A stretch of DNA of 64,000 nucleotides from positions 124,001 to 188,000 of the IMG/VR virus record IMGVR_UViG_3300043399_000272; one strand, written 5' to 3'. A model generated the notes under the pieces. It had not been told where the DNA came from. It did no database searches and saw only the letters and a list, made by a program, of their open reading frames with translations. Both the position numbers and the translations under genes were made by a program. Shown in pieces: positions 9,001 to 58,073 of the stretch (position 1 is the first letter of the stretch; every line of letters begins with the position of its first letter).

Positions 9001-9878
9001 CATTCTCAGTACCCTACCCAGATGTTCCGTTCGGAATGGATCCAATGACATATACTGAAGGAAGTAGAACATGGATCACTGTAAATAGCAAGAGAATAGA
9101 CCCTTCACTTGTAATTTTTGGTGAGAATAATCAGTTGAGTATAATCAGTGATATTTCTAGCAGTGACCAGGTAGTAATAACTGCTATGGTTACAGGAGCA
9201 AGTCCAAACCCAATGACGTTTGATATTAACATCAATAAGTATTCAACTCCGGTGGCATATAGAACTAACTTGCAAGATGGTTCTTGGTTAACTGAAGAAT
9301 TTACAGGTGAAACGGATTATATGACGTTCTTTAACGTAAGCAACTTAGTAGAATCTATTTCTAAGACACTAACCGTAATTGCAAATGGTACAGAGTTATA
9401 TACATTATTGCAAGTTAATATCAACCAGATTAAGGAAGTTATTGTATATAATAATACTACTCTTACTACACTAAGCAGTAATGATTTCACTTTGAGCTTG
9501 ATTTCAGGCGCAAGTGGGTTGACATTCACAAACGGTGCAGAAGAAGGTGACTCAATAACAGTAACGTTAATATTGGGAGACACTGTAGAAATTAACGGAG
9601 AGCGTATTAGATTCAGTACAATTTCTATTGAAAATAATACTATTTCTGGATTGACTCGCGGTGTTGACGGAACACTAGTAGCTCCGGTTCATCCTCAATA
9701 TGCTATAGGATATGGTATCAACGATGCAAGAAGATTGACGCCTGAGCAATATAGTGTAGTTTGGGAAAGTACAGATATTGTATCTACTTCATATTATGAC
9801 GAGATTCCTAAAACAGATCCATTACAGATCAGTACAACGGAAATTGCTCAGTTTTTACAAAGTAGCGCATCAAATTGA
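3..9878 (+). CDS. Giant virion structural protein (baseplate/tail-associated), 5'-partial
   Basis: The frame is open to the window edge. It has FG-GAP-like repeats (FGYSL..GS.L.VG.P), Asp-box repeats (RSTNGTTW, RSLNGSNW) and a CBM-like YNVGSVVSYAGYVWKC. It is T/S/N-rich and followed by tail genes. Confidence 0.75.
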   Translation, partial: TNNYANVPFAKSGGMITETFGTSVAYIPDFGYLVGDSAAGKVYVFVQADNGSFFLKDTMSYPGTTFGTVIAYSEQLVVITAPGPALGISQIYIYRIPTTNSINGLTLQQVITFGGTIGKSVTISQDSNLLYLGSEDNNLVVIFQLDRVPTHTGSGLSLAAATQVRSKQFICSGNVGNLITEGQRVSFSTAYTNLGVTTYYPITEFMNEFKVLGNQTGLLSYGDQVTFNTSGTGSTIAYTIGSFYVDEGLTLNITGAAGNGTFAAVSYAAQAVAPFQIGEKIIISGMTPAAYNGTHTVVACTTTQVTFASTATGPMTVAGTVSAPTITVFSTIENFATGTNINVGNPIYKITFSQDDVHTVVTSTYNSSTNKTTFLLQDEISYSTPSGSNIFIVSDAFSIGGILSSVLAAEDDKYGFSLTTNYDGSKLFVGAPYTDFSESLTDTGVVFAYDRLIINVEVQYDQKEGQPFVIRPPFTPTDQTRVLLNGVLLQSNQYIVIFGVIFIDDIGMVAGDILTVNSINFVLTSQLFSQDNLSDLRQGELFGYSLSSNKYGSELLVGVPFDVSNNTQKEGSVIRFTNAGKRFGRIQGVIECNLYEPTYLLLNGQIVNAFSETPLLATISTGATTCTISALAASYLPNSGVISFTNTLTGSIQSIAYTSVNATTGVITFAVPLPTKNGSSQTFTAGTTTVTLPLGNAANVANAINNTNIDNIRAFSTEDNRLQIFLLKNNLGQSNNKLNLGVFNGNFLTMLGVIDYVKSQVIQDPHAQTHTQFGYSVKFNQEDSFVVGAPSSDRYNSTTFDEQYEDTHKNTVFDNDLTIFEDRAFNAGSVYMYDYIVSYDESLTNIGNYIYAQSCNYTTNDYGSFPYYGQVVDYNDGVVMVGAPQFKPGVENGQTWIFANDSMEPNWHPYRESDPIVNTEKIQKAQLYDNVTNETLVSLDYIDPLQGKLLGVVGENLDFVSTTDPANYTAVDINNGSATWSWAQVGKLWFDTSTTKFLNYHQNDVTYNSEYWGSVFPGSTVTVYTWIESLVLPVLYEGPGTVYDSGKYSTVYVTDSNDNLVPKYYFWVRGTNQLFTAAGKTLTDSIIEQYIANPKNSGIAFVAPLRPNTYAFYNSKEYINNKTTNFHLGYSSSDNDNTGHQEFQLIRTNFTDDFLYGFVNTSKGYAVPTSLYDKYIDSFSGTDEMGAPVPDITLPKLMQSGVSVRPRQSFYYNRLLALQNYLEYANNVVKQYPINEMGNITFLYAQGEFYNTPNYWENIYWWAEGYSNTTKARFEVPIYSDLLTLTPTEGLIVGVAQNPQGKREVYVYRESKWSRIGLEDGTIQFLDSLWDYSSNQIGFGENFFDNTPYDSYPSVETRYIIRALNEQIYVGSLQQHRNNSLTLMFEYIQSESVENQNYLPWLTKTSFVDVHYTVRELTENEKFQRDNQTLLEGYINELKPYRVVLKDFYLKYSKTDLYAGEITDFDLPAVWNDTIGRFVSPQLTFNQDNGPYKFGVENNIWNEYQYSDWFNNYGTIFSEISNTLVTELSEFISSTQTYLYVKNSNSLPVTGVIRIGEEKISYGGISQLEGKLTGLIRGFDDTVSSSHTANASVYMDVPAVVVLDAGRDYASTPNVIAYVDLSKYPPPKREARLQAVMAVDKVASITVVDPGEGYVTTPSIVIESSVEYTSTKDAINFVSNLVQVETTDLATGELVYVSSSADNGSKKIIPDGYYYINVIEISLLSVTGTSLVSFYTTLADSIKGINRVDFTNSEYISNSYTITVGIRARARATMDSLQVRSLKPTLRFDRTSYRPMITPWTPNEYYSSQYISYGNDASSPIKLYDSLVYENVSGTVSPAGGTGATFTVYVVVTGVEYNVSVEDLGQDYDIGDVITILGTSLGGTTSNNCIITVDAVDGDGGITDVSVSGTPFISTEGIYINPSYASLQGALLPVTDLSSVDGSAVVTVDLNYSGLKPGQINNTYMYFFTEPTEANQGIYVYDDSLSGGAVIRISRPKFNPSDLSNLYEILIEDAGLGYAEGNEIRISGSLLGGQNGINDAIIVITKVNPDTSIFSATISGTANGDFGRYYVRVNSYDSALNQCEMSIFSDQNLLIPVSYASFIWNGTNTSYGYLPEQIVDNYTFNYNVGSVVSYAGYVWKCINANNDSEFNVNNWIIISSDNYILNALDRIEAYYEPTINMPGKDPQQLMKGISYPNNTYLGNKFAPEDEIPLDFILRNNTFYPRTINIKGVVFNGNTVVAVGDSTSGSSVLIYDNETSLFSNYNISEVSLGITDLSFSNGRYVLTTTNQNQSVWISDDAVNWFTVGTYSPYDFMDYDELQYDSSGLVVESYPKNGALAADEFSLVTGNQSISKSTDEVVWEEIFNIQSNLNQILKDIIYVDISAFTGYMAFGVGEEVTSGAGTAAPVISSCSLIYTSDDTTVWTKQTPTLSTLGIYGAVATTTSVIVVGESGLIYSTTNMSTWTAGVISGSPVTTNINSVAFGNGVFVAVGDKTGTSSTDPGLILRSTNGTTWTQVSSVFFTNNNLNKVTYGEDGYFYAAGENATILRSLNGSNWENMSNIQVDDPYYIVQGNDFLFGYGPEELVPGIVTDTLSMYVRSAPGAYWDLDTVTTINPDVPYWYKHTGFNMQTVVAKPDNDNVVSFAGLVVNPMTLSVFVIDDETQLGTRIYTDLSSNTPVTTSSNPIGYSIDWITETITLSGAISATESIMIEVYEVGNGQELVRANSKIYPMKTDGNGKTIIVFEQLYQEIVADPVVFVNGVKFEYVTTFTDTNQFTVTNTSENFLMLQFNTALSSETDYVVYAILATGSTLRNRNQVLNYSIPETQVYVPTGTETTIDLDFDISIGTNEDNAIVEVNGERLIPVTEYSFNTSTNQLVLVNSVTSDDIVAITTYNDTSRQWLVTDTYTGISVYPISYIDTSLAVATITFETDPAYSSGTMVYINGTNGTVELNRNAYYVKPVEVDSVYYYEIYTDADLYYPVTGHDIGTYTGGGVASESTFSVPYPDVPFGMDPMTYTEGSRTWITVNSKRIDPSLVIFGENNQLSIISDISSSDQVVITAMVTGASPNPMTFDININKYSTPVAYRTNLQDGSWLTEEFTGETDYMTFFNVSNLVESISKTLTVIANGTELYTLLQVNINQIKEVIVYNNTTLTTLSSNDFTLSLISGASGLTFTNGAEEGDSITVTLILGDTVEINGERIRFSTISIENNTISGLTRGVDGTLVAPVHPQYAIGYGINDARRLTPEQYSVVWESTDIVSTSYYDEIPKTDPLQISTTEIAQFLQSSASN

Positions 9879-16941: not shown

Positions 16942-17869
16942 TATAGCAGATTTAGATTGTATCTATCTAAGCTACGATGAACCGCAGAAAGAAGAATTTT
17001 GGCTTAAAATCAAAAACATGATTCCATGGGCACGTAGAGTAGACGGTGTGAAAGGATCAGATGCCGCACACAAAGCAGCAGCCGAAGAAAGTTTTACAGA
17101 TAGATTCATTCTTATTGACGGTGATAACTTACCGGATATGGAGTTTTTCAACTTAGCGTTAGACTTCACTAACAAAGACCCTATATATGAACAAGCACAA
17201 TATAGATGGAGAGCAAAGAATCACATTAATGGTTTACGTTACGGTAACGGTGGTATTAGTTCATGGACAAAAGAATACGTCATGAACATGAAAACTCACG
17301 AAGCTAGTAACGGAGATAGTACAACGACAGTTGACTTTTGCTTAGACTATCAGAACAGTATATATTGGGCAATGCATGATTGTTATTCAACAACCTATCC
17401 TAATTACACACCATTTCAAGCATGGCGAGCCGGATTCCGTGAAGGTGTTAAGATGTGTTTAGTGGGAGGTAATGTTCCTGAAATAAATGATTTCAAACGC
17501 AATGTTGCAAGTAGAAATATGAACAATCTAACAATATGGCATAATGTAGGAGCTGACGTTGAAAATGGTTTATGGGCTATTTACGGAGCTAGATTAGGCA
17601 CATACTTAACGATGTTGCAAGATTGGGATGTTAACAAAGTACAATGGTTTGATAACTTTACTGAACTATGGGACCGATATGGCAATGTAGATCCACTAGA
17701 ACAGTCTGATATTATCGGTGAAAAATTAAAAGACAAACTTGGATTACCGATGTGTGTATTGTCACCAGAACAGTCTATTTTCTTCAAAAGACACTATAAT
17801 GCCGATAAGTATAATCTCGGACCATTAGTAAGAGAAATCGATGTTATTAGAAAGATTGAGGGTTGGTAA
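16922..17869 (+). CDS. Glycosyltransferase-like protein
   Basis: DCIYLSYDEP...VDGVKGSDAAHKAAA...FILIDGDN (DxD)...AWRAGFREGVK; homologous to the C-terminus of 25631-27964. Confidence 0.6.
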   Translation: MSSKIIDIADLDCIYLSYDEPQKEEFWLKIKNMIPWARRVDGVKGSDAAHKAAAEESFTDRFILIDGDNLPDMEFFNLALDFTNKDPIYEQAQYRWRAKNHINGLRYGNGGISSWTKEYVMNMKTHEASNGDSTTTVDFCLDYQNSIYWAMHDCYSTTYPNYTPFQAWRAGFREGVKMCLVGGNVPEINDFKRNVASRNMNNLTIWHNVGADVENGLWAIYGARLGTYLTMLQDWDVNKVQWFDNFTELWDRYGNVDPLEQSDIIGEKLKDKLGLPMCVLSPEQSIFFKRHYNADKYNLGPLVREIDVIRKIEGW

Positions 17870-19251
17870 TGACAAAGAACCTAAATCAAATGAACATAGA
17901 AAATATGTTGACCAGAATGACTGAGATAGAGAGCAAACTTGGCAGCAAAACTGTATGTACTGCAAAATGGTTACAAAGTACAATTTATCTAATGAACGGG
18001 TTTACTCACAGTTGTCACCACCCCAGCACACATAAAATACCTATTAGCGAAATAAAAAGAAGTCCTAGCGCACTACACAACACGGAATATAAAAAACAAG
18101 TTCGCGGCAAAATGCTCAACGGTGAACAACCGGATGAATGCAGATATTGCTGGAATATCGAAAACTTGGGTACCGGTAACATAAGTGATAGGACGTACAA
18201 GAGTGCAAACGTTGAATGGAGTTACTCGTTTTTAGATAGAGTTATAGATACACAAGACACAGGAGATGTAGACCCTACCTATCTTGAAGTTGCTTTTGAT
18301 AACACTTGTAATTTTAAATGCATGTATTGTACTCCTGACATTAGCAGCAAATGGATGGAAGAAATAGAACAGCATGGCCCATATTCAGTTGGGGTAGGTA
18401 ATATTGAATGGTTGCAACTTTCTGGAAAGATGCCAATTCCTCAAAGAGAATATAATCCATACGTTGACGCATTTCACGAATGGTTTCCTAAAGTTAAAGA
18501 AAACTTAACCAATTTTAGAATTACTGGTGGTGAGCCACTGTTGAGCAAAAACATGTGGCGCACATTAGACGAATTACTAAAAGAACCTAACCCTAATTTG
18601 ACGTTGGGCATTAATAGTAATATGGATGTTCCTGACAATTTAATCGATAAGTTAATTCAGTATATTCATGAACTGAAGAAAAATGTTAAACAAGTCGAAA
18701 TTTATACTAGTTGCGAAGCACACGGTGAGCAAGCTGAATATATTCGTTATGGTATGAAGTATGAACGTTTTATGGAAAACGTCAATAAGATTTTGACACA
18801 AACTGACACCCGAGTTAATTTTATGGTTACATTCAATGCATTGAGTATAACTAGCTTTACTAAGTTTTTAAGTGACATGTATGATTTGCGAGTAAAATAT
18901 AACGAAAATGATAGTATCAATCGAATTCCATTAATGATTAGTTACTTGCGTTGGCCACAGTTCCAAGATGTTAGAGTATTGCCTAATGAAATTAAACAGC
19001 GTTACATTGATGAAATCATAACTTTTATGAAACAACGGGATCGTAACAACAGTAGCAACCGTGCTGGGAGATTTTATTTGGAAGAAATAGATCAAGCCGA
19101 AAGATTGAAAAATTTTATGTATACTGATCCGGATAATATAGATACGTTGCGTGAACAATTTAGAAGTTTCTATAAAGAATATGATTCCAGAAAAAACACA
19201 AACTTTATAAAAACTTTCCCAGAATTAAAAGATTTTTACTTAGGATTATAA
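17869..19251 (+). CDS. Radical SAM protein with N-terminal Twitch/SPASM-like Cys cluster
   Basis: CNFKCMYC, TGGEP; N-terminal CTAKW..SCHH..ECRYCW; TAATG-coupled start. Confidence 0.9.
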   Translation: MTKNLNQMNIENMLTRMTEIESKLGSKTVCTAKWLQSTIYLMNGFTHSCHHPSTHKIPISEIKRSPSALHNTEYKKQVRGKMLNGEQPDECRYCWNIENLGTGNISDRTYKSANVEWSYSFLDRVIDTQDTGDVDPTYLEVAFDNTCNFKCMYCTPDISSKWMEEIEQHGPYSVGVGNIEWLQLSGKMPIPQREYNPYVDAFHEWFPKVKENLTNFRITGGEPLLSKNMWRTLDELLKEPNPNLTLGINSNMDVPDNLIDKLIQYIHELKKNVKQVEIYTSCEAHGEQAEYIRYGMKYERFMENVNKILTQTDTRVNFMVTFNALSITSFTKFLSDMYDLRVKYNENDSINRIPLMISYLRWPQFQDVRVLPNEIKQRYIDEIITFMKQRDRNNSSNRAGRFYLEEIDQAERLKNFMYTDPDNIDTLREQFRSFYKEYDSRKNTNFIKTFPELKDFYLGL

Positions 19252-20771
19252 TGCCAAAGAAGCCAGAAGAAACATACCAACAATATAGAGATAGAGTAAT
19301 CAACTCTATAAGCCCTAGCTTCTGCGGAGCTAAGTGGTACAATGCTACTATATGGTTAGGATCTGGAACAACTGCTAGTTGCCATCATCCACCTGCACAC
19401 AAAATTCCTATTGAAGAAATTAAGAGAAACTACAAAGCACTTCATAATACAGAATATAAAAAACTCGTTAGAGAACAGATGCTCAGAGGTGAAAGACCCA
19501 CAGAGTGTGATTACTGCTGGCGTATTGAGGATTTGGGCGACGATAAAGTTAGCGATAGAGTTTACAAATCAATTATATATTCTGATGACAAGTTAATAAA
19601 AGCAAAAGACATATTTGGTAGTAAATTAGATGTTGATTTGGAAACACTAGAAATTGCGTTTGATGCTAATTGTAACTTTGCATGTAGCTATTGCAATCCT
19701 AGTTTCAGCACAACATGGATGAGTGATGTTAAAGTCAATGGCCCTTATCAGAATTTAGTTAGTGACGGTGGCGGTGCGTACCAACAAGACGGTAGCTGGG
19801 CACAACCGTATGGATTAAAGAATGAAGGTAATCCATACATTGAAGCATTTTGGAAATGGTGGGAAAGCGACCTACAACATTCACTAAAAGAATTGAGAAT
19901 TACAGGTGGCGAAGCCACTATGAGTCAAGACTTTTGGAAGTTGCTAGATTGGTGGAACGAACATCCAGAGTGCCAGGTAAGTTTAGCCATTAACAGCAAC
20001 TTGGGAACAGTTACACAATTAACAGAAAGATTGTGCAAAGCTACCCATAGTCATAAAAACTTCCATTTATATACAAGTAACGAAGCACACGGAAAACATG
20101 CCGAATACATTCGTGACGGATTGAACTATGAAAATTGGTTAAAGAATCTAACATACATGATAGAAAATGGTAACTGCAAAGGTACGCATGTTATGATGAC
20201 TATTAATAGTCTTTGTTTGTTTAGCATTACTGATTTTATGGATGACATGATTAAACTCAAGAAAAAGTATGGAAGGAATCATGCTATGATGAGTTTTAAC
20301 ATTCTACGTTTCCCTAGTTTTATGAGTGCAGTTACATTACCTGAATCTATATGCAGAGCACAAGCTGATAAATTGGAAACATGGGTTAAAGATAAAACTG
20401 ACCTACACCAAATGGAGCGTGACGGAATCGCTAGACTAATTGCATATCTTAGAGAAGTACGTGAGGGTCACAGCCATACATCAAGTATTGAAAGTAGAGA
20501 ACGTGACTTTAAAACTTTCTTTATGCAATATGACACTAGAAGAAAGAAAAACTTTTTAGCAACATTTCCTGAATTAACTGAGTGGTATAACAATATACCT
20601 ATCACTAAACTAGAACCACTTAAAGAGTTCAAAGACGGTGATAGTACAAAGGGCTGGTCTCATGTGCAATTAGAGTTAGTCAAAAGAGCAAATGACGAAA
20701 AGTGGATATTAAAACCTAGTAATGTAAATCCAGGTGGAGAAAACTATGAGCGACCAAAAGAAGGTATCTGA
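19251..20771 (+). CDS. Radical SAM protein with Twitch/SPASM-like domain
   Basis: CNFACSYC, TGGEA; CGAKW..SCHH..ECDYCW. Confidence 0.9.
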   Translation: MPKKPEETYQQYRDRVINSISPSFCGAKWYNATIWLGSGTTASCHHPPAHKIPIEEIKRNYKALHNTEYKKLVREQMLRGERPTECDYCWRIEDLGDDKVSDRVYKSIIYSDDKLIKAKDIFGSKLDVDLETLEIAFDANCNFACSYCNPSFSTTWMSDVKVNGPYQNLVSDGGGAYQQDGSWAQPYGLKNEGNPYIEAFWKWWESDLQHSLKELRITGGEATMSQDFWKLLDWWNEHPECQVSLAINSNLGTVTQLTERLCKATHSHKNFHLYTSNEAHGKHAEYIRDGLNYENWLKNLTYMIENGNCKGTHVMMTINSLCLFSITDFMDDMIKLKKKYGRNHAMMSFNILRFPSFMSAVTLPESICRAQADKLETWVKDKTDLHQMERDGIARLIAYLREVREGHSHTSSIESRERDFKTFFMQYDTRRKKNFLATFPELTEWYNNIPITKLEPLKEFKDGDSTKGWSHVQLELVKRANDEKWILKPSNVNPGGENYERPKEGI

Positions 20772-24149: not shown

Positions 24150-25631
24150 ATGAATTATATTGGAATATCATCAGGGTTTCACGATGCATCCGTAACTGTT
24201 CTTAAAGACGGACAAATTCTATTTGCGGGTCACAGTGAACGTTATAGTAAAATAAAAAATGACAAGAATTTAGACGTTGACCTCATCAAAGATGCATTAA
24301 GTTATATTGATGGCCCGCACGAATTGCATTATTATGAAAAACCCTGGTTAAAGGTTTTGCGTCAATGGTACGCTGGACAAAAAACTCATTGGTCTAATAT
24401 ATTTACTAGCAATGTGATCGGTAAGAGTTATCACGAAATGTTAGGGAAAAAGACTATTCATACACACAGTCATCATTTAAGCCATGCTGCTGCAGGGTTT
24501 CAAACTAGCCCATTTAATGAAGCAACTATTGTCGTTATTGATGCTATCGGTGAGTTTGATACTGTAACTATTTGGAGTGCTCATTATGATTATAATCACA
24601 ATGCGGTATACAAAAAACTTTATACAAAACGCTATCCAAATAGTATCGGTCTTTTCTATAGCGCAGTTACTAAGCGTGTAGGGTTGAGACCCAATGATGA
24701 AGAATACATCACTATGGGAATGTCTGCTTATGGTTCACCTGTAGTTATAAGTGAGTTATGTTCTGAAGTTTTTGATGACTTAAATGAATTAAAATTTAGA
24801 AAAAATTTACATATAGGGTTTGACGAAGATTTCTTACCAAATGCAAAAGATGAAGATATTGCCCGCTCAGCACAAGATATAGTCGAACACTCAATAATGA
24901 ATATTATGCAAAAAGCTAGAACATTGAGTGAAAGCAATAATCTTGTCTATGCAGGTGGTGTAGCATTAAATTGTTTAGCTAATCGTTTGATTGGAAAATA
25001 TTTCTCTAACCTTTGGATAATGCCCAATCCAGGTGATGCTGGCTCTAGTTTAGGAGCAGCATGTTTAGGTTACAGAAAAAAAGTAGAATTTAATTCAGCT
25101 TTCTTGGGTCACGAAATTCAAGGTGAATATCCAGTTCATAATATCTTGCAAGGATTGTTGACAGACAAGATAGTAGGTGTTGCTAGTGGTAAGGCTGAGT
25201 TCGGCCCCAGAGCATTTGGTAATAGAAGTTTATTAGCAGATCCTAGAAGTAAAGACATAAAAGATCAGGTAAACGAAATTAAGCGCAGACAGAAGTTCAG
25301 ACCTTTCGCACCTGTTATATTAGAAGAACATGCACCTAACTATTTCATTATGCCATTAAATTGGAAGAATTCACGTTATATGCAAGTTGTTGCTAAGTGC
25401 AAGAATCCTGAACGATTCCCTGCAATCGTGCATGTAGATGGCACTAGCAGAGTGCAAACTGTTCCTAAAGACGGATCAGGAATTCGTAAGCTATTAGAAG
25501 AATGGCATAAAAAGACTGGGTGCCCAATGTTATTGAACACTAGTTTAAACATTCGAGGCGAACCAATGGTTAATGATCGGGCAGATGCGGATAGATTTGA
25601 ACAGCTATATAATGTTAAAGTCTATAGTTAA
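24150..25631 (+). CDS. Carbamoyltransferase, NodU/CmcH family
   Basis: HDAS, ERYS..KND, HH.SHAA, DAIGE, GGVALN, GDAGSS.GA, EFGPRA.GNRS, FRPFAP, H.DGT.R.QTV, LLNTSLN..GEP. Confidence 0.95.
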   Translation: MNYIGISSGFHDASVTVLKDGQILFAGHSERYSKIKNDKNLDVDLIKDALSYIDGPHELHYYEKPWLKVLRQWYAGQKTHWSNIFTSNVIGKSYHEMLGKKTIHTHSHHLSHAAAGFQTSPFNEATIVVIDAIGEFDTVTIWSAHYDYNHNAVYKKLYTKRYPNSIGLFYSAVTKRVGLRPNDEEYITMGMSAYGSPVVISELCSEVFDDLNELKFRKNLHIGFDEDFLPNAKDEDIARSAQDIVEHSIMNIMQKARTLSESNNLVYAGGVALNCLANRLIGKYFSNLWIMPNPGDAGSSLGAACLGYRKKVEFNSAFLGHEIQGEYPVHNILQGLLTDKIVGVASGKAEFGPRAFGNRSLLADPRSKDIKDQVNEIKRRQKFRPFAPVILEEHAPNYFIMPLNWKNSRYMQVVAKCKNPERFPAIVHVDGTSRVQTVPKDGSGIRKLLEEWHKKTGCPMLLNTSLNIRGEPMVNDRADADRFEQLYNVKVYS

Positions 25632-49401: not shown

Positions 49402-49651
49402 CAATGAAGATGCCGTAACATCTTGTTGTGTGGTACATACATTCAATATGGGTGATGTAGAAGATCCCGATTTGTTGGCGGCTCAGAGTTTGTTTGAATT
49501 TGAAAAATCAGAAAAAGGTGAGTGGGTAATGAAAAATTCAGCACCTGTTGCTAGTTGGCATAGGATGCCCAAAGACTACGGATGGCAATATCAAATTCGT
49601 GCGTATCTGACACCCGAAAAAATGACATATTATAAATTGAAGTACGAATGA
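49361..49651 (+). CDS. Hypothetical protein (start uncertain)
   Basis: F.MGDVEDPD...G.WVM..S; coupled to the next gene. Confidence 0.55.
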   Translation: MKVMDQLKQSWQSDNEDAVTSCCVVHTFNMGDVEDPDLLAAQSLFEFEKSEKGEWVMKNSAPVASWHRMPKDYGWQYQIRAYLTPEKMTYYKLKYE

Positions 49652-50610
49652 AAATTTTAGTAACAGGTGGATTAGGTCTTATAGGCCACCACGTTGTAAA
49701 ACGTTTGCAAAACATGAGTCACCAAGTATCTATCATGGATACACGGACTACATATGGCGTTATCCCACGTGAAGAAATCACTTATTTGATGGGCGAACGT
49801 CTTAAACAGATTCCGTCAATTGAAAGGTTATATGACTTTGATATTGCAAATCAAGGACAAGTAAATCACGTATTTTATAAAGAAGAACCTGAACTTGTCA
49901 TCCACATGGCTAGTTTCCCTCGACAAAAAGTTGTAAATGCAAATCCTGCATTAGGTTCAAGAACTATGTCAGAGGGATTATTGAATCTATGTGAAGCTAG
50001 TGTAGAATACGGAGCCAAACGTTTCTTGTATATCAGCTCCAGTATGGTGTACGGAGATTTCAAAGATGATGTTAAAGAGGATTATAATTGCAAACCTCAA
50101 GGTCAATATGGAATAATGAAACTAGCAGGAGAACACCTTGTCAAAGACTACAGCCGTCGTAATTGCTTCACTCACACTATCATTCGTCCTAGTGCTGTTT
50201 ACGGGCCACTTGATGTTGAAGATAGAGTCATATCAAAATTCATGCTCACAGCAATGCGAGGAGAAGTGCTCAAGGTCAATGGAGCGACGGAAACCTTGGA
50301 CTTCACCTACGTTGAAGATGCCGCAGACGGTATAGTTGCCGCAGCACTATCAGACAATACACACAACAAAACTTATAACATAACTAAGAGCCATAGCCAT
50401 AGTTTATTAGATGCTGCTAACCTTGCAGTAAAGATTGTGGGTAAAGGCACAGTTAATGTCAGGGATAGAGATCCTGACTTTCCTAGCAGGGGAGCGTTAA
50501 ATATCGATGCCGCACGTAAGGACTTTGGATTTGATCCAAAAGTAGACGTTGAAGAAGGCTTTCAGAAATACTATGATTGGTTAAAGGATTCTACATACTA
50601 TAATAAATAA
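49648..50610 (+). CDS. NAD-dependent sugar epimerase/dehydratase (extended SDR)
   Basis: VTGGLGLIG, SSSMVYG, YGIMK, DFTYVED. Confidence 0.92.
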   Translation: MKILVTGGLGLIGHHVVKRLQNMSHQVSIMDTRTTYGVIPREEITYLMGERLKQIPSIERLYDFDIANQGQVNHVFYKEEPELVIHMASFPRQKVVNANPALGSRTMSEGLLNLCEASVEYGAKRFLYISSSMVYGDFKDDVKEDYNCKPQGQYGIMKLAGEHLVKDYSRRNCFTHTIIRPSAVYGPLDVEDRVISKFMLTAMRGEVLKVNGATETLDFTYVEDAADGIVAAALSDNTHNKTYNITKSHSHSLLDAANLAVKIVGKGTVNVRDRDPDFPSRGALNIDAARKDFGFDPKVDVEEGFQKYYDWLKDSTYYNK

Positions 50611-51330: not shown

Positions 51331-51771
51331 TCAGTCACACCAAGACTGTTTTGCTTCCCCGAAATATTCTCGGGCAAATCCGTTCTTAATCAACATTGAA
51401 CGTAGACTTTGACCATTTAGGATAACGTCTCCTAATACACGGCCACCGAATTTATCCCACGCATATAACGTGACCTGTCTCTTTTGACTGGCAGCAACTG
51501 TGTCTTTTGTGAATTTAGTTGCTGCTTGACCTTTAGCATCCTCGGAAGCGCATTTTGCTCTGAATCCCTTTTCAGGCGTGTCGACCCCGTATATTCTTAC
51601 AGCTAATTCTGGTTTTAGCGGTGCAGGAAGAAAGGGTGCAGATATCACAATAGTATCCCCGTCATTTACACGGATAATTTGTGCGTCATATGTGACTCCT
51701 GTGGGCGTTTTTTGTGCAAAAACACTGGATGCAACGGATGCTAGTAATAAAGATAATAGTAATTTGTTCAT
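51331..51771 (-). CDS. Thermonuclease (SNase) family protein with signal peptide
   Basis: DGDT, VRIYGVDTPE, DKFGGRVL, LIKNGFAREY. Confidence 0.9.
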   Translation of the reverse strand: MNKLLLSLLLASVASSVFAQKTPTGVTYDAQIIRVNDGDTIVISAPFLPAPLKPELAVRIYGVDTPEKGFRAKCASEDAKGQAATKFTKDTVAASQKRQVTLYAWDKFGGRVLGDVILNGQSLRSMLIKNGFAREYFGEAKQSWCD

Positions 51772-51820: not shown

Positions 51821-52600
51821 ATGACAGTTACCACAGCAAATATTGACATAGGTTCTTTACCGAACGACGGAACAGGTGATCCGTTACGTACGGCGTTTGA
51901 AAAGATCAATGATAATTTTTTAATATTAGAAGAATTAGCACCCCAAGGTCCTAATGGATCATTTCAATTCAATAACGATGGCATACCTAACGGAACCGGG
52001 AATTTTACTTATGTTTCCAGTGATAATGTCATACAATTAGGAATAGATGTACGATTATTAGGAAATGTTTCTATTGGTAATACGACTAATAGACTGAGCA
52101 ATTTGTATGTAGGAAACTCTGCACTATATTTAGGTAATGTAAACATAAGAGAATCGGCAAACGTAGTAAGTTTTCCGATATCAGTGTTGCCTTCTAGTAA
52201 AGCAAGTTTAGCTGCTGATAATATCAATGCTGACGGAAATGTAGTAGCAGTTGGTAAAATTCAGACTGCAAATTTAGCCATATCTGAACTCCAAGTAACT
52301 ACCTCAAATAATAGTACAAATCAAGTTTTATTCCAAATCCCTGCAACTGAATTTGTAAATGGAATTGTCTACGTCCACACTAGAGAAGTCAATTCCAATA
52401 ATAGCCAGTCTGTTACATTAGCGGTGAATAAAAACAACAATAATAACACCGTAGGTTATAGCGTTTATGGTACTATTTTCGTTGGCACAGTATTAACAGA
52501 CTATGACGTAGACATAGGTTATGGAAATGTTAGGGTAATGGTAAATCCGTTATTAAATGCTAATATGGTTCATACGGTATCTTATCAATATACAATTTAA
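51821..52600 (+). CDS. Baseplate/tail structural protein with T4 gp9/gp10-like N-terminus
   Basis: IDIG..PNDGTGDPLR.AF.KIN.NF. Confidence 0.7.
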   Translation: MTVTTANIDIGSLPNDGTGDPLRTAFEKINDNFLILEELAPQGPNGSFQFNNDGIPNGTGNFTYVSSDNVIQLGIDVRLLGNVSIGNTTNRLSNLYVGNSALYLGNVNIRESANVVSFPISVLPSSKASLAADNINADGNVVAVGKIQTANLAISELQVTTSNNSTNQVLFQIPATEFVNGIVYVHTREVNSNNSQSVTLAVNKNNNNNTVGYSVYGTIFVGTVLTDYDVDIGYGNVRVMVNPLLNANMVHTVSYQYTI

Positions 52601-53027: not shown

Positions 53028-53726
53028 ATGGAAAAATTATTAGATATTAATAAAACATTAGACCTAGTAAAGTTGAAATTTTATAATGAGTGGTTATACA
53101 CTGCTCACATATACGATGAGGGAGATAGTGGTCTACACTCTTCCCTAACTAAGCAAGTTGTCTCAGCATACATAGATCCCTTAAAGTTACCCAAAGATGC
53201 AGTAATTTTAGATATGGGAGCAGGCCCCGGATATTTCTTAGATGAAATGAAAGAACGGGGATATACCAAATGTATTGGGGTCGGTCTTAGTACCAAAGAC
53301 AACGAAATAGCCCGAAGCAAAGGGCATGTTATTAAAGAATACGATTTCACTTTCATCCCCCAACAAGAAGGGTGGTATGATGAATCAGTTGATTTTATAT
53401 TTGCTAGACATTCATTAGAACATAGTCCTTATCCTATTTTCACACTAATGGAATATAATCGCTTGTTGAAACAATTTGGCAAAATGTACATCGAGCTTCC
53501 GGCACCCGGTGCGCAACGTAAATTTGAATATAATCTAAATCATTACAGTGTTTTAGGTGAAGATATGATAGTTGCTTTATTAGAGAGAACTGGTTTTAAG
53601 ATTGATTTCTTTAATATCATGGAATTTGATGCCGAGGTGAACGTTTCAGAAGATAAAAGAGAACAGATCAAAGAAAAGTATTTCTCAATCATGGTCACTA
53701 AACAAAAACCATTGGATATCAAATAA
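53028..53726 (+). CDS. Class I SAM-dependent methyltransferase
   Basis: ILDMGAGPG, VDFIFARHSLEH, RLLK..G...IELP. Confidence 0.88.
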   Translation: MEKLLDINKTLDLVKLKFYNEWLYTAHIYDEGDSGLHSSLTKQVVSAYIDPLKLPKDAVILDMGAGPGYFLDEMKERGYTKCIGVGLSTKDNEIARSKGHVIKEYDFTFIPQQEGWYDESVDFIFARHSLEHSPYPIFTLMEYNRLLKQFGKMYIELPAPGAQRKFEYNLNHYSVLGEDMIVALLERTGFKIDFFNIMEFDAEVNVSEDKREQIKEKYFSIMVTKQKPLDIK

Positions 53727-53733
53727 ATACTTA

Positions 53734-54012
53734 ATGACCTTTGATCCCTGGAAACAGCGAAAAATAATGAATGGTCTGGATAAACTTCAGACCATTCCTT
53801 TACCTGCAGAAGTTAATGATACTGTTGAAGACATGAAAAGACTTGCTGGAATATCTTCAAATCATGTACCCGAGGGGTCAAATATTAGCTTTACGGGAAA
53901 TCAAAAGGGTGAATTAATGAAAAAACATAATATTCAACCCGGAACACCTGAATGGTTTCAGCTATGGTTTAGTTTACCCTATATGACTGGTGAGAAGCCA
54001 GTTGATAAATAA
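53734..54012 (+). CDS. Hypothetical late protein
   Basis: MKRLAGI, IQPGTPEWF.LWF; 4 nt after TAAATA. Confidence 0.65.
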   Translation: MTFDPWKQRKIMNGLDKLQTIPLPAEVNDTVEDMKRLAGISSNHVPEGSNISFTGNQKGELMKKHNIQPGTPEWFQLWFSLPYMTGEKPVDK

Positions 54013-54016
54013 TAAT

Positions 54017-54292
54017 ATGAGAGCTACTGATTTTATTCGCGGATTACTCGATATCATTGACGGTGTCCAAACACAAGAGAATCCTATAGTGGATTATGCT
54101 GAAGAAAATTCGGCTGATTGCGATATGGATGAAATCGCACAGGATACCTATAGTAATACGCCTGATGAACAGATCACGCCCACTGATACAATCATGAGTA
54201 TAGGTAATGATGTACATAAACCTAAAAATCCAGCAGATATAAGAGTATCGACAGTAGCATTGTATCCAGAAACTGCATATAAAGGTAAGTAA
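54017..54292 (+). CDS. Hypothetical acidic late protein
   Basis: MRATDFIRG..; 5 nt after TAAATA. Confidence 0.6.
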   Translation: MRATDFIRGLLDIIDGVQTQENPIVDYAEENSADCDMDEIAQDTYSNTPDEQITPTDTIMSIGNDVHKPKNPADIRVSTVALYPETAYKGK

Positions 54293-55152
54293 TGGCTACG
54301 ATTAATGTTGATGTACAGAGTTTAATTAACGCAGCAGAATATGATACCTACTCTGTTGCAGATACCACAACAGTTGGTACGTTTAAAACAACAATTCAAA
54401 CAGCGACTGGATGTAGCGTTGATTGGTTTGATTTGGTATATAACAACACTATTCTAGATGTTTCCAAAACCTTAGCATTTTATTCTATACCCACTGGTGC
54501 TAGTATAAGAACTCATAATAAAATTTCTCGACTCGCTACGCTGGAACTAAGACAGAAAAGCAAATTAGATTTGGCTGCATTGGATAGAGAGTATTCAGAT
54601 AATCCTCGAAGCACATACGATATTACAGAGTTGCCTACTCAATACATTGATGATTCTGTATATGACAATCCAAATCCAGGTGGGTTAACTGAAGGCCGCC
54701 CCTGGATTGACACTAAAACTCCGTTCTCATTCTATGAGGCAATCAATACTACATCAGCATTGCAAACAACGCAGTATGTAAGTGGTAATAAGATTTATGC
54801 ATATTCCTCGAGTCTTGATGTCCCTAGTTATCAACCGGCTAGGGTAATAGTCAATGATATTGAATTAGCAAACACTACGCTTCGTGGACACACCATGGTA
54901 GTCACAAATAGTTTTGGTGATTTAGTAAGTGTTACAAATTATGATACTTACGGTTCATCATCGGCAGTAACTGCATTAGCATCTGCATTGGGCGGAGTAG
55001 CAAGTGAAAATATTGTTATATTAGTAGTATATGATGCTAGTGCATTCAATGCAGCGTGTAGGTCTGCCTTAACTACGGGGTATGGTGATACTAACAGCAA
55101 CACCTGGACTTCTTCTAGGGTAGATCATATCTTTATCGGAATTAAAATATAA
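54292..55152 (+). CDS. Ubiquitin-like domain plus ILEI/FAM3-like domain protein
   Basis: The first ~77 aa align by eye to ubiquitin (TV..K..IQ...G...D...LVY....L....TL..Y.I); the C-terminus RGHTMVV...G.......YDTY.....L...L.......IVILV..D is ILEI-like. Confidence 0.6.
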   Translation: MATINVDVQSLINAAEYDTYSVADTTTVGTFKTTIQTATGCSVDWFDLVYNNTILDVSKTLAFYSIPTGASIRTHNKISRLATLELRQKSKLDLAALDREYSDNPRSTYDITELPTQYIDDSVYDNPNPGGLTEGRPWIDTKTPFSFYEAINTTSALQTTQYVSGNKIYAYSSSLDVPSYQPARVIVNDIELANTTLRGHTMVVTNSFGDLVSVTNYDTYGSSSAVTALASALGGVASENIVILVVYDASAFNAACRSALTTGYGDTNSNTWTSSRVDHIFIGIKI

Positions 55153-56507
55153 TGGCAGGCGAAGATACCTCACAGTTATACACACCTGAACATCACTCGG
55201 GGTCGATGGATAAGCGCCTTAACTCAACTAACTACATTCATCCACAAGAGACAAATTTATTGAATCTTGCGAAGGCAATGGAGTATAATGTACAAGGTCA
55301 ACCTGTATTAAGAACTACATCAGGTGCAAGTCCGGCATCTAACGATGCGTTCGGTAGATTACGTGTAAGCAATCCATTAACATTATTTGATAGTTTTCAT
55401 CGTTACAACGATAACGGAAAGATTAACACGTACACGAATGGTACTGCATCTGCGGTAGCTAATACCAACGCCGGGCTTATTGATTGCACAGTGGGTACTG
55501 ATTCAGGTGATGCAGTATATAGGGAAAGTACAAAAGTATTTTCCTATCAACCGGGAAAAAGTTTACAGGTACTTACAACATTTTGTATGGCACCTGGTAA
55601 AACAAATCTAAGACAACGCATCGGGTATTTTGACACTAGCAATGGAGTGTTCCTAGAACAAGATGGGACAACATTACGTTTTAGAATTCGCTCATCTGTT
55701 ACTGGCTCAATACAATACGAAAGTGTAGATCAGGCTGATTGGAATGTTGATCCGTTAGATGGATCAGGAGAATCGACAATAACATTAGATATCACTAAGG
55801 CTCAAATTCTTTTCTTTGATATTGAATGGCTGGGTGTTGGTAGTGTTCGTTGTGGATTTGTTATTGATGGTCAATTTATATTAGCGCATGTTTTTAACCA
55901 CGCTAACATCATCACTGGTACATACATGACTACTGCTTGTTTACCTGTAAGAATGGAACTAGAAAATACAGGACCAACTGAGAGTTCTAGTTTATATAAG
56001 CAAATTTGCACAACTGTGATATCCGAAGGTGGATATGCACTAACCGGTAGACCACTTAGTATAGGTCATACTCTCAGTGCACCTTATGTTTTAGCAACTC
56101 CTAACACAGTATATCCTATTTTCAGTATGAGATTAAAATCCAATCGGCTAGGTGCTATAGTTTTACCTAAAAACTACAGTGTAGGACTAACCGGTAATCA
56201 CAACTTTAGATTTATGATTATAATAGGTGGTACTACTACAGGCGGCACTTGGGTAGATGCGGGATCATCAAGTTCAGTAGAATATAACTTAACAGCAACT
56301 AGCATTTCCGGTGGTAGAATAGGTGAGTGGAAACAAATCATTGGTAGCAATCAATTTGCAGGAGTTGCTGACGTTGCGGACCCATTTCAATATCAACTGG
56401 AAAGAAACACGTTTACTGACACAGCTTCAGAATTAACTATCTGTTTAACTACAAGTGGTAATAATGTTAACGTCTACGGTGCAGTAAATTGGGAAGAGAT
56501 AACTTAA
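55152..56507 (+). CDS. Virion structural protein
   Basis: DAFGRLRVS.P.TLF, YQPGKS, EWLGVG.VR, W.E end. Confidence 0.6.
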   Translation: MAGEDTSQLYTPEHHSGSMDKRLNSTNYIHPQETNLLNLAKAMEYNVQGQPVLRTTSGASPASNDAFGRLRVSNPLTLFDSFHRYNDNGKINTYTNGTASAVANTNAGLIDCTVGTDSGDAVYRESTKVFSYQPGKSLQVLTTFCMAPGKTNLRQRIGYFDTSNGVFLEQDGTTLRFRIRSSVTGSIQYESVDQADWNVDPLDGSGESTITLDITKAQILFFDIEWLGVGSVRCGFVIDGQFILAHVFNHANIITGTYMTTACLPVRMELENTGPTESSSLYKQICTTVISEGGYALTGRPLSIGHTLSAPYVLATPNTVYPIFSMRLKSNRLGAIVLPKNYSVGLTGNHNFRFMIIIGGTTTGGTWVDAGSSSSVEYNLTATSISGGRIGEWKQIIGSNQFAGVADVADPFQYQLERNTFTDTASELTICLTTSGNNVNVYGAVNWEEIT

Positions 56508-56525
56508 TACGAACTAAATATCGTT

Positions 56526-58073
56526 ATGAGTGGAACTCCTGCACTAATCAAAACACCCTATCAAAAGACTAAGTTTAAAAGTGATAAGGAACTTGAAGAT
56601 TTTATAAAATGCTGTGACCCTAACACGGGTCCAATGTATTTTATGGATAACTTTTTTATGATTCAGCACCCTACTAAAGGTAGTATGAATTATCATCCAT
56701 GGGACTATCAAAAAAGACTAATCGAGACATATCACAAATATAGATATTCTATTAGTTTAATGCCTCGACAAACTGGTAAGTCAACATCGGCTGCTGGATA
56801 CTTGTTATGGTATGCAATGTTCGTTCCAGACAGTACTATTCTTATAGCAGCACACAAATATACAGGTGCACAAGAAATTATGCAGCGTATTCGTTATGCA
56901 TACGAAGCCTGCCCCGATCACATCAAAGCAGGTGTCACTACATACAACAAAGGGTCGTTAGATTTTGAAAACGGGTCTCGCATTGTATCAGCGACTACGA
57001 CTGAAAATACAGGTCGTGGTATGTCTATTACACTTTTATACCTAGACGAATTTGCGTTCGTTCGACCTACAATTGCTTCTGAATTCTGGACATCTATCAC
57101 ACCAACACTGGCAACTGGTGGTAAAGCAATTATCACAAGTACGCCCAACTCCGACGAAGATCAATTTGCACTGATTTGGAAGCAAGCTAACAAATGTGAA
57201 GACTCGTACGGTAACAAAACAGAATTAGGTATAAACGGTTTCAAAGCATATCGTTCATATTGGCAAGAGCACCCTGATAGAGATGATCAATGGGCTGCTC
57301 AAATGAAAGCGCAATTAGGCGAAGACAGATTCAGACGAGAAATAGGTTGTGAATTTATTATTGCAGACGAAACTCTAATCGCCCCCACAACACTATTAGA
57401 TTTAGAAGGTATAGAACCTATACATCGTCAAGGTCAAATCAGGTGGTATAAAAAGCCCGAAAAAGGAAATATATATGTTGTTGCACTAGACCCCGCTGTA
57501 GGTACAGGCGGAGATAATGCAGCTATTCAAGTGTATGAAGCTAACACCACAACACAAGTGGGTGAATGGAAGCACAATAAAACCGACATACCTTCACAAA
57601 TACGATTGATTGCTGACATAAACAAATACATTGTAGAATGTACTAATGAGCCTGATAACATATATTATTCTGTAGAAGTCAACGGTGTCGGTGAGGCCGC
57701 GCTCGTTAGCTTAAATGAATTCGGGTATCACAATATTCCTGGTATATTTTTAAGTGAACCTGGAAGGAAGAAACGCGGATTTAATACTACTAACAAGAGT
57801 AAACTTACAGCATGTGCTAAGTTCAAAACTTTAGTAGAAAGCAGAAAGATGACCATAAACAGCAGAAGTTTAGTGTCAGAATTGAAAAACTTCATAGCTA
57901 TGGGCGGTAGCTATCAAGCTAAAATCGGAGAATCAGATGATTTAGTTACTTCTACTTTACTAGTTGTTAGGATATTTCAGCAGTTAAGTGATTTTAACTA
58001 CGCTTTAGATCAACATATACGTGACCATGACGAGATAATAGAACCCTTGCCGTTCTTCGCAGTTCTCGGGTAA
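56526..58073 (+). CDS. terL: Terminase large subunit (T4 gp17-like)
   Basis: PRQTGKST, RG.S..LLYLDEFAFV, ITSTPN, F.RE..CEF, ALDPA.G.GGD, DDLV. Confidence 0.95.
   Translation: MSGTPALIKTPYQKTKFKSDKELEDFIKCCDPNTGPMYFMDNFFMIQHPTKGSMNYHPWDYQKRLIETYHKYRYSISLMPRQTGKSTSAAGYLLWYAMFVPDSTILIAAHKYTGAQEIMQRIRYAYEACPDHIKAGVTTYNKGSLDFENGSRIVSATTTENTGRGMSITLLYLDEFAFVRPTIASEFWTSITPTLATGGKAIITSTPNSDEDQFALIWKQANKCEDSYGNKTELGINGFKAYRSYWQEHPDRDDQWAAQMKAQLGEDRFRREIGCEFIIADETLIAPTTLLDLEGIEPIHRQGQIRWYKKPEKGNIYVVALDPAVGTGGDNAAIQVYEANTTTQVGEWKHNKTDIPSQIRLIADINKYIVECTNEPDNIYYSVEVNGVGEAALVSLNEFGYHNIPGIFLSEPGRKKRGFNTTNKSKLTACAKFKTLVESRKMTINSRSLVSELKNFIAMGGSYQAKIGESDDLVTSTLLVVRIFQQLSDFNYALDQHIRDHDEIIEPLPFFAVLG

Follow-up and report, generated by a model that had tools for sequence, protein, structure and literature searches.

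Organization of the locus

The window analysed here is a stretch of 64,000 nucleotides, positions 124,001 to 188,000 of the IMG/VR virus record IMGVR_UViG_3300043399_000272, a viral contig of 260,148 bp that is about 74% complete and has a guanine plus cytosine content of about 38%. The source virus is a large (>260 kb) T4-like aquatic myovirus, and the complete relatives of the phage measure about 355-360 kb. At positions 54292-55152 of the window, on the + strand, lies an open reading frame (ORF) of 286 amino acids, present exactly as an earlier, sequence-only reading of this DNA had described it. On the basis of the ORF, Pfam matches and an AlphaFold2 (AF2) model, its product, named P0001, is composed of an N-terminal ubiquitin-family domain (Ubl), a linker and a C-terminal GG-type lectin domain. 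The AF2 model, built from 49 homologues, has a mean pLDDT (predicted local distance difference test) of 80.6 and is laid out as a ββαββ domain (residues 3-76), a helix (84-101), a low-confidence segment (106-136) and an α/β domain (147-284). Neither a signal peptide nor a membrane segment was found in the P0001 sequence. P0001, its linker and the small acidic protein encoded immediately upstream had no informative match in NCBIfam, PADLOC or PHROGs, and hidden Markov models (HMMs) of the Ubl, the linker and the C-domain each found a single copy in the 260-kb genome. The P0001 gene is the central one of a three-gene cassette (54017-54292, 54292-55152 and 55152-56507) with a 1-nt overlap at both junctions. 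A second viral contig (L022; IMGVR_UViG_3300047548_000491, 99,913 bp) carries a gene whose product is 100% identical and which has the same cassette around it; this indicates that the same or a near-identical phage was independently assembled from another sample.

The N-terminal domain belongs to the ubiquitin family

The Ubl (residues 1-76; 54292-54519, + strand) is a beta-grasp of ββαββ topology, assigned by PF00240, by the model and by Foldseek and VIA structural comparison. PF00240 matches P0001 at residues 19-72 with an E-value of 9.2e-6 and 25.8 bits, which is above the curated cutoff (25.4) though narrowly; the score is 28.7 bits in the six-frame search of the genome and 27.5 bits for residues 1-145. 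HMMER pairs residues 19-71 with residues 14-66 of ubiquitin without a gap, in agreement with the near-gapless ubiquitin pattern that the sequence-only reading had pointed out. That reading also anticipated a beta-grasp closer to ubiquitin than to ThiS/MoaD, and both the AF2 model with its Foldseek matches and the profile search bear it out. The pLDDT is 81-92 across residues 1-80, and the modelled N-domain superimposes on ubiquitin (1ubq) at 1.2 Å over 74 residues, with a template modelling (TM) score of 0.89 and 22% identity. Its Foldseek/VIA matches to ubiquitin and to eukaryotic ubiquitin-like domains (UBLs) lie at 1.1-1.5 Å with 20-29% identity, the Dsk2 UBL reaching 28-29%, and VIA Z values of 11-12.7 were obtained against ubiquitin and the UBLs of ISG15 and OASL. 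The top matches in the PDB, among the Swiss-Prot models and in BFVD were all ubiquitin or UBLs and never ThiS/MoaD. The Pfam profiles ThiS/MoaD (PF02597) and Lambda_tail_I (PF06805) matched neither P0001 nor any of 48 diverse Ubl+linker modules of its family.

Taken alone, P0001 scores marginally in pairwise comparison with a single ubiquitin and significantly only against poly-ubiquitin chains. The doubt that such a score raises is removed because other members of the family match ubiquitin strongly. Thus, PF00240 matches 34 of the 48 modules at E ≤ 1e-3 (best E 2e-12), the other Pfam matches among them being Rad60-SLD in 12, YukD in one and ThiS in none. Identity to ubiquitin forms a gradient, from 61% in the relative P0188 through 43% in P0199 down to about 29% in P0001. 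P0188 is a stand-alone Ubl+linker protein of 131 amino acids that starts with MQIFV and is encoded at positions 314-709 of L016, a metagenome contig of 839 bp. Its Ubl is identical to eukaryotic ubiquitin at 39 of 64 positions (61%), with an E-value of 4e-15 against mono-ubiquitin. At the same time it has the two-residue insertion between beta1 and beta2, the VQSL motif and the linker of the family, and its neighbours, the same small acidic protein on one side and the N-terminus of a phrog_1645 protein on the other, place it in the same cassette. The label "eukaryote-like" given to the domain by the sequence-only reading therefore holds more strongly than could be seen from P0001, given the 61% identity of P0188 to ubiquitin. 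Such identity suggests capture from a eukaryote. Judging from the sequences, a single capture of eukaryotic ubiquitin followed by divergence is probable, rather than independent captures, and P0188 would probably be the least-diverged descendant of that eukaryote-to-phage event.

Conserved linker and absence of conjugation features

Residues 77-141 (54520-54714, + strand) constitute a linker of 65 residues, a putative docking module delimited by conservation and by the model. It begins with the helix at residues 84-101 and continues with the conserved stretch YDITELPTQY...DNPN-x-GL-x-x-GRPW, which is disordered in the monomer model (pLDDT <50 for residues 106-136); residues Q88 and W138 are invariant. 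The linker is the best conserved segment of the protein, its mean pairwise identity among the 49 homologues being 72%; the lectin follows with 67%, and the Ubl, with 56%, is the least conserved one. Comparison with the named families of Pfam, PHROG and NCBIfam and an Atlas feature search yielded no usable match for it. Disorder of the isolated chain in its best conserved part may mean that the linker folds on a partner.

The internal NPNPGG noticed in the sequence-only reading is located at residues 126-131 (54667-54684), inside the linker, and hence within the best conserved module; the beta-grasp ends 55 residues before the GG. Among the 49 close homologues, residue 131 is Gly in 48, whereas residue 130 is Gly in 36 and otherwise Ser, Thr, Ala or Tyr. 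The stand-alone modules of the family end one to three residues after GRPW and not after GG. At the place of the LRLRGG tail of ubiquitin there is instead a conserved (R/K)THNKISRL, devoid of Gly, that runs into the helix. Of the lysines of ubiquitin, K27 corresponds to the invariant K32 of P0001, and K48 and K63, at the gap-free offset of 5, correspond to T53 and T68. As far as the alignment tells, NPNPGG is not a processing site.

The genome was also searched for the enzymes of a conjugation pathway, the E1/E2/JAB genes that would accompany a conjugated modifier. No ThiF, Prok-JAB, JAB or Prok-E2_B was detected among the phage-encoded genes of the 260-kb contig, 74% of the genome. UQ_con and OTU were likewise not found there, a weak result inasmuch as the controls of those searches gave no signal. 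Three relatives of about 355 kb that are 100% complete have neither ThiF nor Prok-JAB, and PADLOC returned no match.

The C-terminal domain is a GG-type lectin

The C-domain (residues 142-286; 54715-55149, + strand) is of the GG-type lectin/ILEI/FAM3/POMGnT1-stem kind according to Pfam ILEI, VIA and profile comparison. PF15711 (ILEI) matches residues 198-285 with an E-value of 3.3e-8 and 34.3 bits (cutoff 27), over positions 1-88 of the 90 in the profile, and the model of the domain superimposes on the POMGnT1 stem (5ggf/5ggj) with a VIA Z of 13.2, at 1.9 Å over 113 amino acids with 23-24% identity; the ILEI-like domain had thus been correctly recognized from the sequence. FAM3B (2yoq) and FAM3A (7ecq) follow with Z values of 13.0 and 12.3. 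The profile of the C-domain family finds the POMGnT1 stem (5ggj) at E 6e-7, FAM3C at 1e-6, FAM3A at 1.4e-5 and FAM3B at 1e-3.

In POMGnT1, Arg129, Asp179 and Arg207 contact β-GlcNAc directly, and the FAM3 proteins are likewise sugar-binding (PMC9802357, PMC9437275). By alignment to POMGnT1, P0001 has a putative sugar-binding triad formed by R198 (54883-54885), D248 (55033-55035) and R276 (55117-55119), all on the + strand. HMMER aligns the R-G and D-A motifs of the family with R129 and D179 of POMGnT1, and R276 was placed opposite R207 by spacing and by the range aligned in VIA. The three residues share a single offset of 69 from those of POMGnT1, with identical spacings of 50 and 28 residues, and they are kept in 48 (R198), 49 (D248) and 49 (R276) of the 49 homologues. 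Conservation of the triad predicts a working lectin.

In cultured phages the same domain forms part of tail, tail-fibre or receptor-binding proteins, and its BFVD matches include RB16 gp35, a receptor-binding protein of Bacillus phage pW4 and the JL tail fibre. A carbohydrate-binding module (CBM) resembling the POMGnT1 stem has been documented on the adhesion devices of streptococcal phages (PMC9437275), and a GG domain has been reported in phage gp35 (PMC10276149).

The three-gene cassette

The first gene of the cassette (54017-54292, + strand) encodes a small acidic protein of about 91 amino acids, counted from the ATG at 54017 (an alternative GTG start is at 53990), and its stop overlaps the start of the P0001 gene (TAATG). 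An amphipathic helix (MRATDFIRGLLDIID) at the N-terminus of the protein is followed by an acidic middle part and, at the C-terminal end, by the conserved motif G-x-D-V-x-K-P-K-x-P-A-D-I-R...Y-P; the protein has no match in Pfam, PHROG, NCBIfam or PADLOC. Of 80 related viral loci, 44 have a homologue directly upstream, with a gap of 0-4 nt. It is beside 31 of the 34 loci bearing a Ubl as compared with 13 of the 43 in which the linker occurs without one, counts that are uncorrected for kinship and for truncated contigs; the co-occurrence may reflect a functional link or merely shared ancestry.

The third gene (55152-56507, + strand), whose start overlaps the stop of the P0001 gene, encodes a protein of 451 amino acids belonging to phrog_1645, "virion structural protein" (PHROG 1645, E 6e-119). 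Its N-terminus is conserved and disordered (N-[ST]-T-x-Y-x-H-P-x-E-x-N-L-L-N-L-x-K-A-M-E-Y...G-x-P-x-x-R) and is followed by a GH16/ConA-like beta-jelly-roll (about residues 65-297) and by a second beta domain. The AF2 model has a pLDDT of 81.6 and matches GH16 folds with Z values of 17-18, its top Foldseek match being the receptor-binding domain of gp23 of mycobacteriophage TM4. With structural proteins of the S-RIM cyanophages and of podovirus HMO-2011, a Puniceispirillum phage, the protein shares about 53% identity, and the members of phrog_1645 in these phages are annotated as virion structural. In cyanophage S-RIM12 the phrog_1645 gene is located between those of the terminase small subunit (TerS) and large subunit (TerL). 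The HMMs of the Ubl, the linker and the C-domain have no match in the S-RIM12 and HMO-2011 loci that carry it.

A phrog_1645-family protein is encoded directly downstream in about 50 of the 80 loci. The possibility that this slot is hypervariable and filled with unrelated proteins was considered and rejected, as iterated profiles show one family with repeat insertions. Comparison of the protein of the window (55152-56507) with those at L020:1289-3304 and L075:1287-3866 places variable GNV-type repeat insertions just past the conserved N-terminus, the lengths of the proteins ranging from 430 to 859 amino acids; the insertions resemble a stalk of variable length. The family conserves a D-x-E-W-L-G-V-G motif, and the canonical GH16 catalytic motif E-x-D-x-x-E was not found in it on reading by eye. 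Complex prediction for the three cassette proteins with P0001 as partner gave a score of 0.00, which speaks neither for nor against binding.

Domain exchange in the family

A word-indexed search retrieved 1,358 clusters (metagenomic, 90% identity) of homologues of about 286 amino acids, and an exhaustive profile search retrieved 1,253 representatives of mixed architectures; in the databases the relatives bear automatic names only, such as "Interleukin-like EMT inducer" or "YukD-like". The 80 viral-contig loci display the modularity of the protein. With a Ubl, the combinations are Ubl+linker+ILEI (21 loci), Ubl+linker only (11) and Ubl+linker with another domain (2); in its absence they are linker+ILEI (29), linker with another domain (8), linker only, of 67-72 amino acids (6), and ILEI only (3). 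The alternative C-termini joined to the linker or to Ubl+linker are Laminin_G_3, PA14/GLEYA and Calx-beta, all of glycan-binding types, while ILEI is also paired with Gly_rich_2, PA14 or LamG. In P0138 the order is a β-helix-like repeat region, the Ubl and then the linker, so that the module closes the protein C-terminally. One Ubl+LamG relative adjoins a long-tail-fibre gene of the S74-chaperone type. On the tree of the shared linker and lectin, the presence of the Ubl demands six changes, at least three of which are forced by well-supported branches; such repeated gain and loss marks the Ubl as dispensable cargo. When P0001 was compared with 50,697 phage genomes by megablast and tblastn no match was obtained, and divergent members of the family reach these genomes only through their C-terminal lectin domains.

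Surrounding genes

Downstream of the cassette, a T4-type TerL is encoded at 56526-58073 (+ strand; Pfam Terminase_6N and Terminase_6C, PHROG TerL). The sequence-only reading had placed P0001 in a late/terminase region, which is correct as regards TerL, 1.4 kb downstream, but the genes that come next are those of a gp32-like single-stranded DNA-binding protein and a UvsX-like recombinase. Upstream by 1.7 kb, the gene at 51821-52600 (+ strand) encodes a protein of 259 amino acids whose first 34 residues contain a T4 gp9/gp10-like motif (..GDPLRTAFEKINDNF..); it is likely a small fibre or baseplate-connector-like protein, and a homologue is syntenic in locus L010. The ORF at 51331-51771 (- strand; 146 amino acids) has an N-terminus that looks like a signal peptide by eye. 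An NAD-dependent epimerase/dehydratase-like gene is at 49648-50610 (+ strand), Pfam Epimerase being recorded for the syntenic gene of L010, and a class I S-adenosylmethionine (SAM) methyltransferase gene is at 53028-53726 (+ strand; Methyltransf_23, E 3e-16). In the freshwater relatives L004, L008 and L012 the cassette is found near phage-encoded genes for ribosomal protein S21, HSP20, ClpS, ClpX-like and HSP70 proteins and a PAAR-motif protein. Farther away, a giant ORF at 3-9878 (+ strand), open at the 5' end of the window and at least 3,291 amino acids long, matches phrog_10938, "virion structural protein" (E 2e-41). Positions 17863-20771 and 24150-25631 (+ strand) hold two tandem radical-SAM-domain proteins (462 and 506 amino acids) and a Nol-like carbamoyltransferase (E 3e-104), which may form a modification or auxiliary metabolic cluster of the phage.

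A model for P0001

Three functions had been guessed for the protein from its sequence: a decoy or inhibitor of ubiquitin-like immune systems, a cleavable conjugatable tag and a virion decoration domain. Only the last of them fits the evidence, namely the glycan-binding C-termini, the cassette and the occurrence of the lectin in tail proteins. Considering that: (i) the glycan-binding heads are swapped on a constant docking segment; (ii) the gene is coupled to gene 3, whose family is annotated as virion structural and has a glycan-recognition fold, and (iii) cultured phages have this lectin domain in their tail or fibre proteins, and phage CBMs of the same fold have been published, we propose, with a confidence that stands about midway, that P0001 is a modular adhesin associated with the virion, which binds glycans and docks through its linker, the Ubl being a cargo that can be dispensed with.

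According to the proposal, P0001 would be a subunit encoded by an accessory cassette of three genes that serves adhesion. The linker would be a docking peptide, disordered when alone and probably folding on a partner, that tethers its cargo to the particle; the likeliest partners are the conserved N-terminus of the gene 3 protein, the small acidic protein or both. The GG-type lectin would bind beta-linked hexose or N-acetylhexosamine, either at the envelope of the host or in polysaccharide of the environment, and would so provide a reversible primary adhesion. The Ubl would probably derive from a ubiquitin taken from a eukaryote that lost its LRLRGG tail to the linker on fusion, and it would persist as an integral, non-processed and dispensable UBL domain in the manner of Rad23 and Dsk2. 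Its role is probably structural, as an aid to folding or solubility, as a spacer or as a protein-protein contact.

Several points weigh against the adhesin proposal. The presence of P0001 on the virion is deduced from context and its sugar binding from residue conservation only; the partners of the linker are candidates, and the proposal does not account for what the Ubl contributes. The lectin-less members of the family, both Ubl+linker and linker only, imply that adhesion cannot be the universal function and that the core function resides in the linker. The cassette lies beside TerL and replication genes, with no recognizable tail module around it, and no cultured phage among the 50,697 sequenced genomes carries the Ubl or the linker module. 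The T4 late-promoter motif TATAAATA was found twice against 8.6 times expected, and nowhere by the cassette, a result that is uninformative.

Alternative explanations

Among the alternatives, the one that survives best, unlikely as we judge it, is that P0001 does not belong to the virion and is an accessory factor whose place of action is the infected cell or, once the cell has lysed, its surroundings. Such a factor could help to assemble the GH16-like protein, as its chaperone or adaptor, or else be a soluble lectin that masks receptors or binds cell-wall glycans and thereby serves superinfection exclusion or prevents adsorption to debris. A factor of this sort would be in keeping with the tight coupling to the downstream gene, the disorder of the isolated linker, the existence of lectin-less members and the chaperone-like appearance of the small acidic partner. 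However, a constant segment that carries now one, now another glycan-binding head is typical of an exposed adhesin, the lectin domain of cultured phages sits in tail and structural proteins, and P0001 is devoid of any signal peptide or membrane segment.

A bolder view has a slimmer chance still. In it the linker would be a universal docking tag, not recognized before, of large aquatic phages with its cargo swapped at both ends, and the captured ubiquitin, exposed on the virion, would be a real ligand. The targets of such a ligand might be ubiquitin-recognizing proteins, for example E1 or deubiquitinating (DUB) immune enzymes of the Bil type, or alternatively the machinery of protist grazers or of algal hosts that harbour the bacterial host.

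It seems improbable, more so than either of the foregoing, that the Ubl is an anti-defence mimic, that is, a decoy, competitive substrate or inhibitor for Bil or CBASS Cap2/Cap3 immunity, which might act by occupying E1 or DUB enzymes or by shielding the fibre from modification by Bil. Besides the true ubiquitin-family fold in a phage, a preprint offers a natural connection between fibre and Ubl, in that Bil conjugates its Ubl to the central tail fibre of phages (bioRxiv 10.1101/2023.09.04.556158). Nevertheless, P0001 has no C-terminal Gly for adenylation by E1, its tail being buried in the fusion; the Ubl is the least conserved segment, is repeatedly lost and, when present, is always joined to the docking linker in a structural-type cassette; and the family is like eukaryotic ubiquitin and unlike the bacterial Ubls of Bil. 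Together with the missing E1, E2 and JAB genes and the blank PADLOC result, this leaves the decoy guess of the sequence-only reading with no positive support.

The least credible explanation, namely cleavage behind Gly130-Gly131 (or directly behind the Ubl) and transfer of the released Ubl to proteins of the phage or the host, has in its favour that NPNPGG exists and that G131 is nearly invariant, but it is contradicted by the Ser, Thr, Ala or Tyr that occupies position 130 in 13 of the 49 homologues, by the distance of the GG from the beta-grasp and the ending of stand-alone modules after GRPW, by the lack of a Gly tail, by the Thr residues at the equivalents of the acceptor lysines K48 and K63, and by the failure to find E1, E2, JAB or OTU in the genome (with the weak OTU and UQ_con controls) and E1 or JAB in the three complete relatives.

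Comparison with known systems

True ubiquitin-family domains are a hallmark of eukaryotes that has also been encountered in their viruses and in a small number of bacteria. The UBLs of the Rad23/Dsk2 type are N-terminal, unprocessed and without a free GG. P0001 resembles eukaryotic ubiquitin and the UBLs of Dsk2, Rad23 and ubiquilin in having a beta-grasp within 1.1-1.5 Å of theirs as the N-terminal domain of a larger protein. It differs from them in being encoded by a phage, in its fusion to the linker and lectin and in the two-residue beta1-beta2 insertion, and from ubiquitin in the loss of K48 and K63 and in the lack of a UBA domain, of a proteasome context and of conjugation enzymes. Among the structural matches of the N-domain is Bacteroides fragilis BfUbb (PDB 8hm1), a eukaryote-like ubiquitin in a non-eukaryote, with no GG terminus and no known use in conjugation. 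BfUbb is a secreted stand-alone toxin acting between strains, whereas the phage Ubl is fused and part of a structural-type cassette.

With the GG-type lectins, FAM3 and the POMGnT1 stem, P0001 shares an ILEI match above cutoff, Z values of 12-13 and the Arg/Asp/Arg triad. Phage precedents are the T4-type hinge connector gp35 and CBM_1 of the tail-associated lysin (Tal) of streptococcal phage TP-778L (PMC9437275, PMC10276149), but P0001 is a small stand-alone protein with a Ubl and a portable linker, not a module in a long fibre or Tal. Lambda TAPI offers another beta-grasp in a phage setting, and has been connected with tail morphogenesis (Iyer et al. 2006, PMC1779556). Unlike TAPI, ThiS, MoaD or YukD, P0001 matches neither Lambda_tail_I nor ThiS/MoaD, its family matches YukD in one of the 48 modules as against ubiquitin in 34, it has no JAB, NlpC/P60, E1 or E2 partner, and its affinity is to eukaryotic ubiquitin. 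Finally, the decorations of phages such as T4 Hoc/Soc, Ig-like domains and CBMs would be analogous in placing variable, weakly glycan-binding domains on the virion by means of a constant anchor; no similarity of sequence or fold to the Hoc/Soc type of display was detected, and the anchor of P0001 would be a peptide of 65 residues with cargo at both ends.

Lectins on phage adhesion devices are already known, while the ubiquitin-family domain in a phage, the linker and the cassette appear to be undescribed, and the 50,697 sequenced phage genomes contain none of the three. A literature search retrieved no paper on a phage ubiquitin-lectin fusion, which, given its incomplete coverage, is weak evidence of novelty, and in bacteriophages it retrieved as ubiquitin-family domains only distant beta-grasp relatives such as lambda TAPI.

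Implications

The family would represent a case, dated by divergence, of gene capture from a eukaryote by a phage, in which ubiquitin was domesticated as a non-conjugated domain. The linker and the three-gene cassette would define an uncharacterized adhesion or docking system of the uncultured jumbo phages that abound in lakes and oceans. The cassette would bear on how jumbo phages find their hosts, and the linker could be a natural display scaffold.

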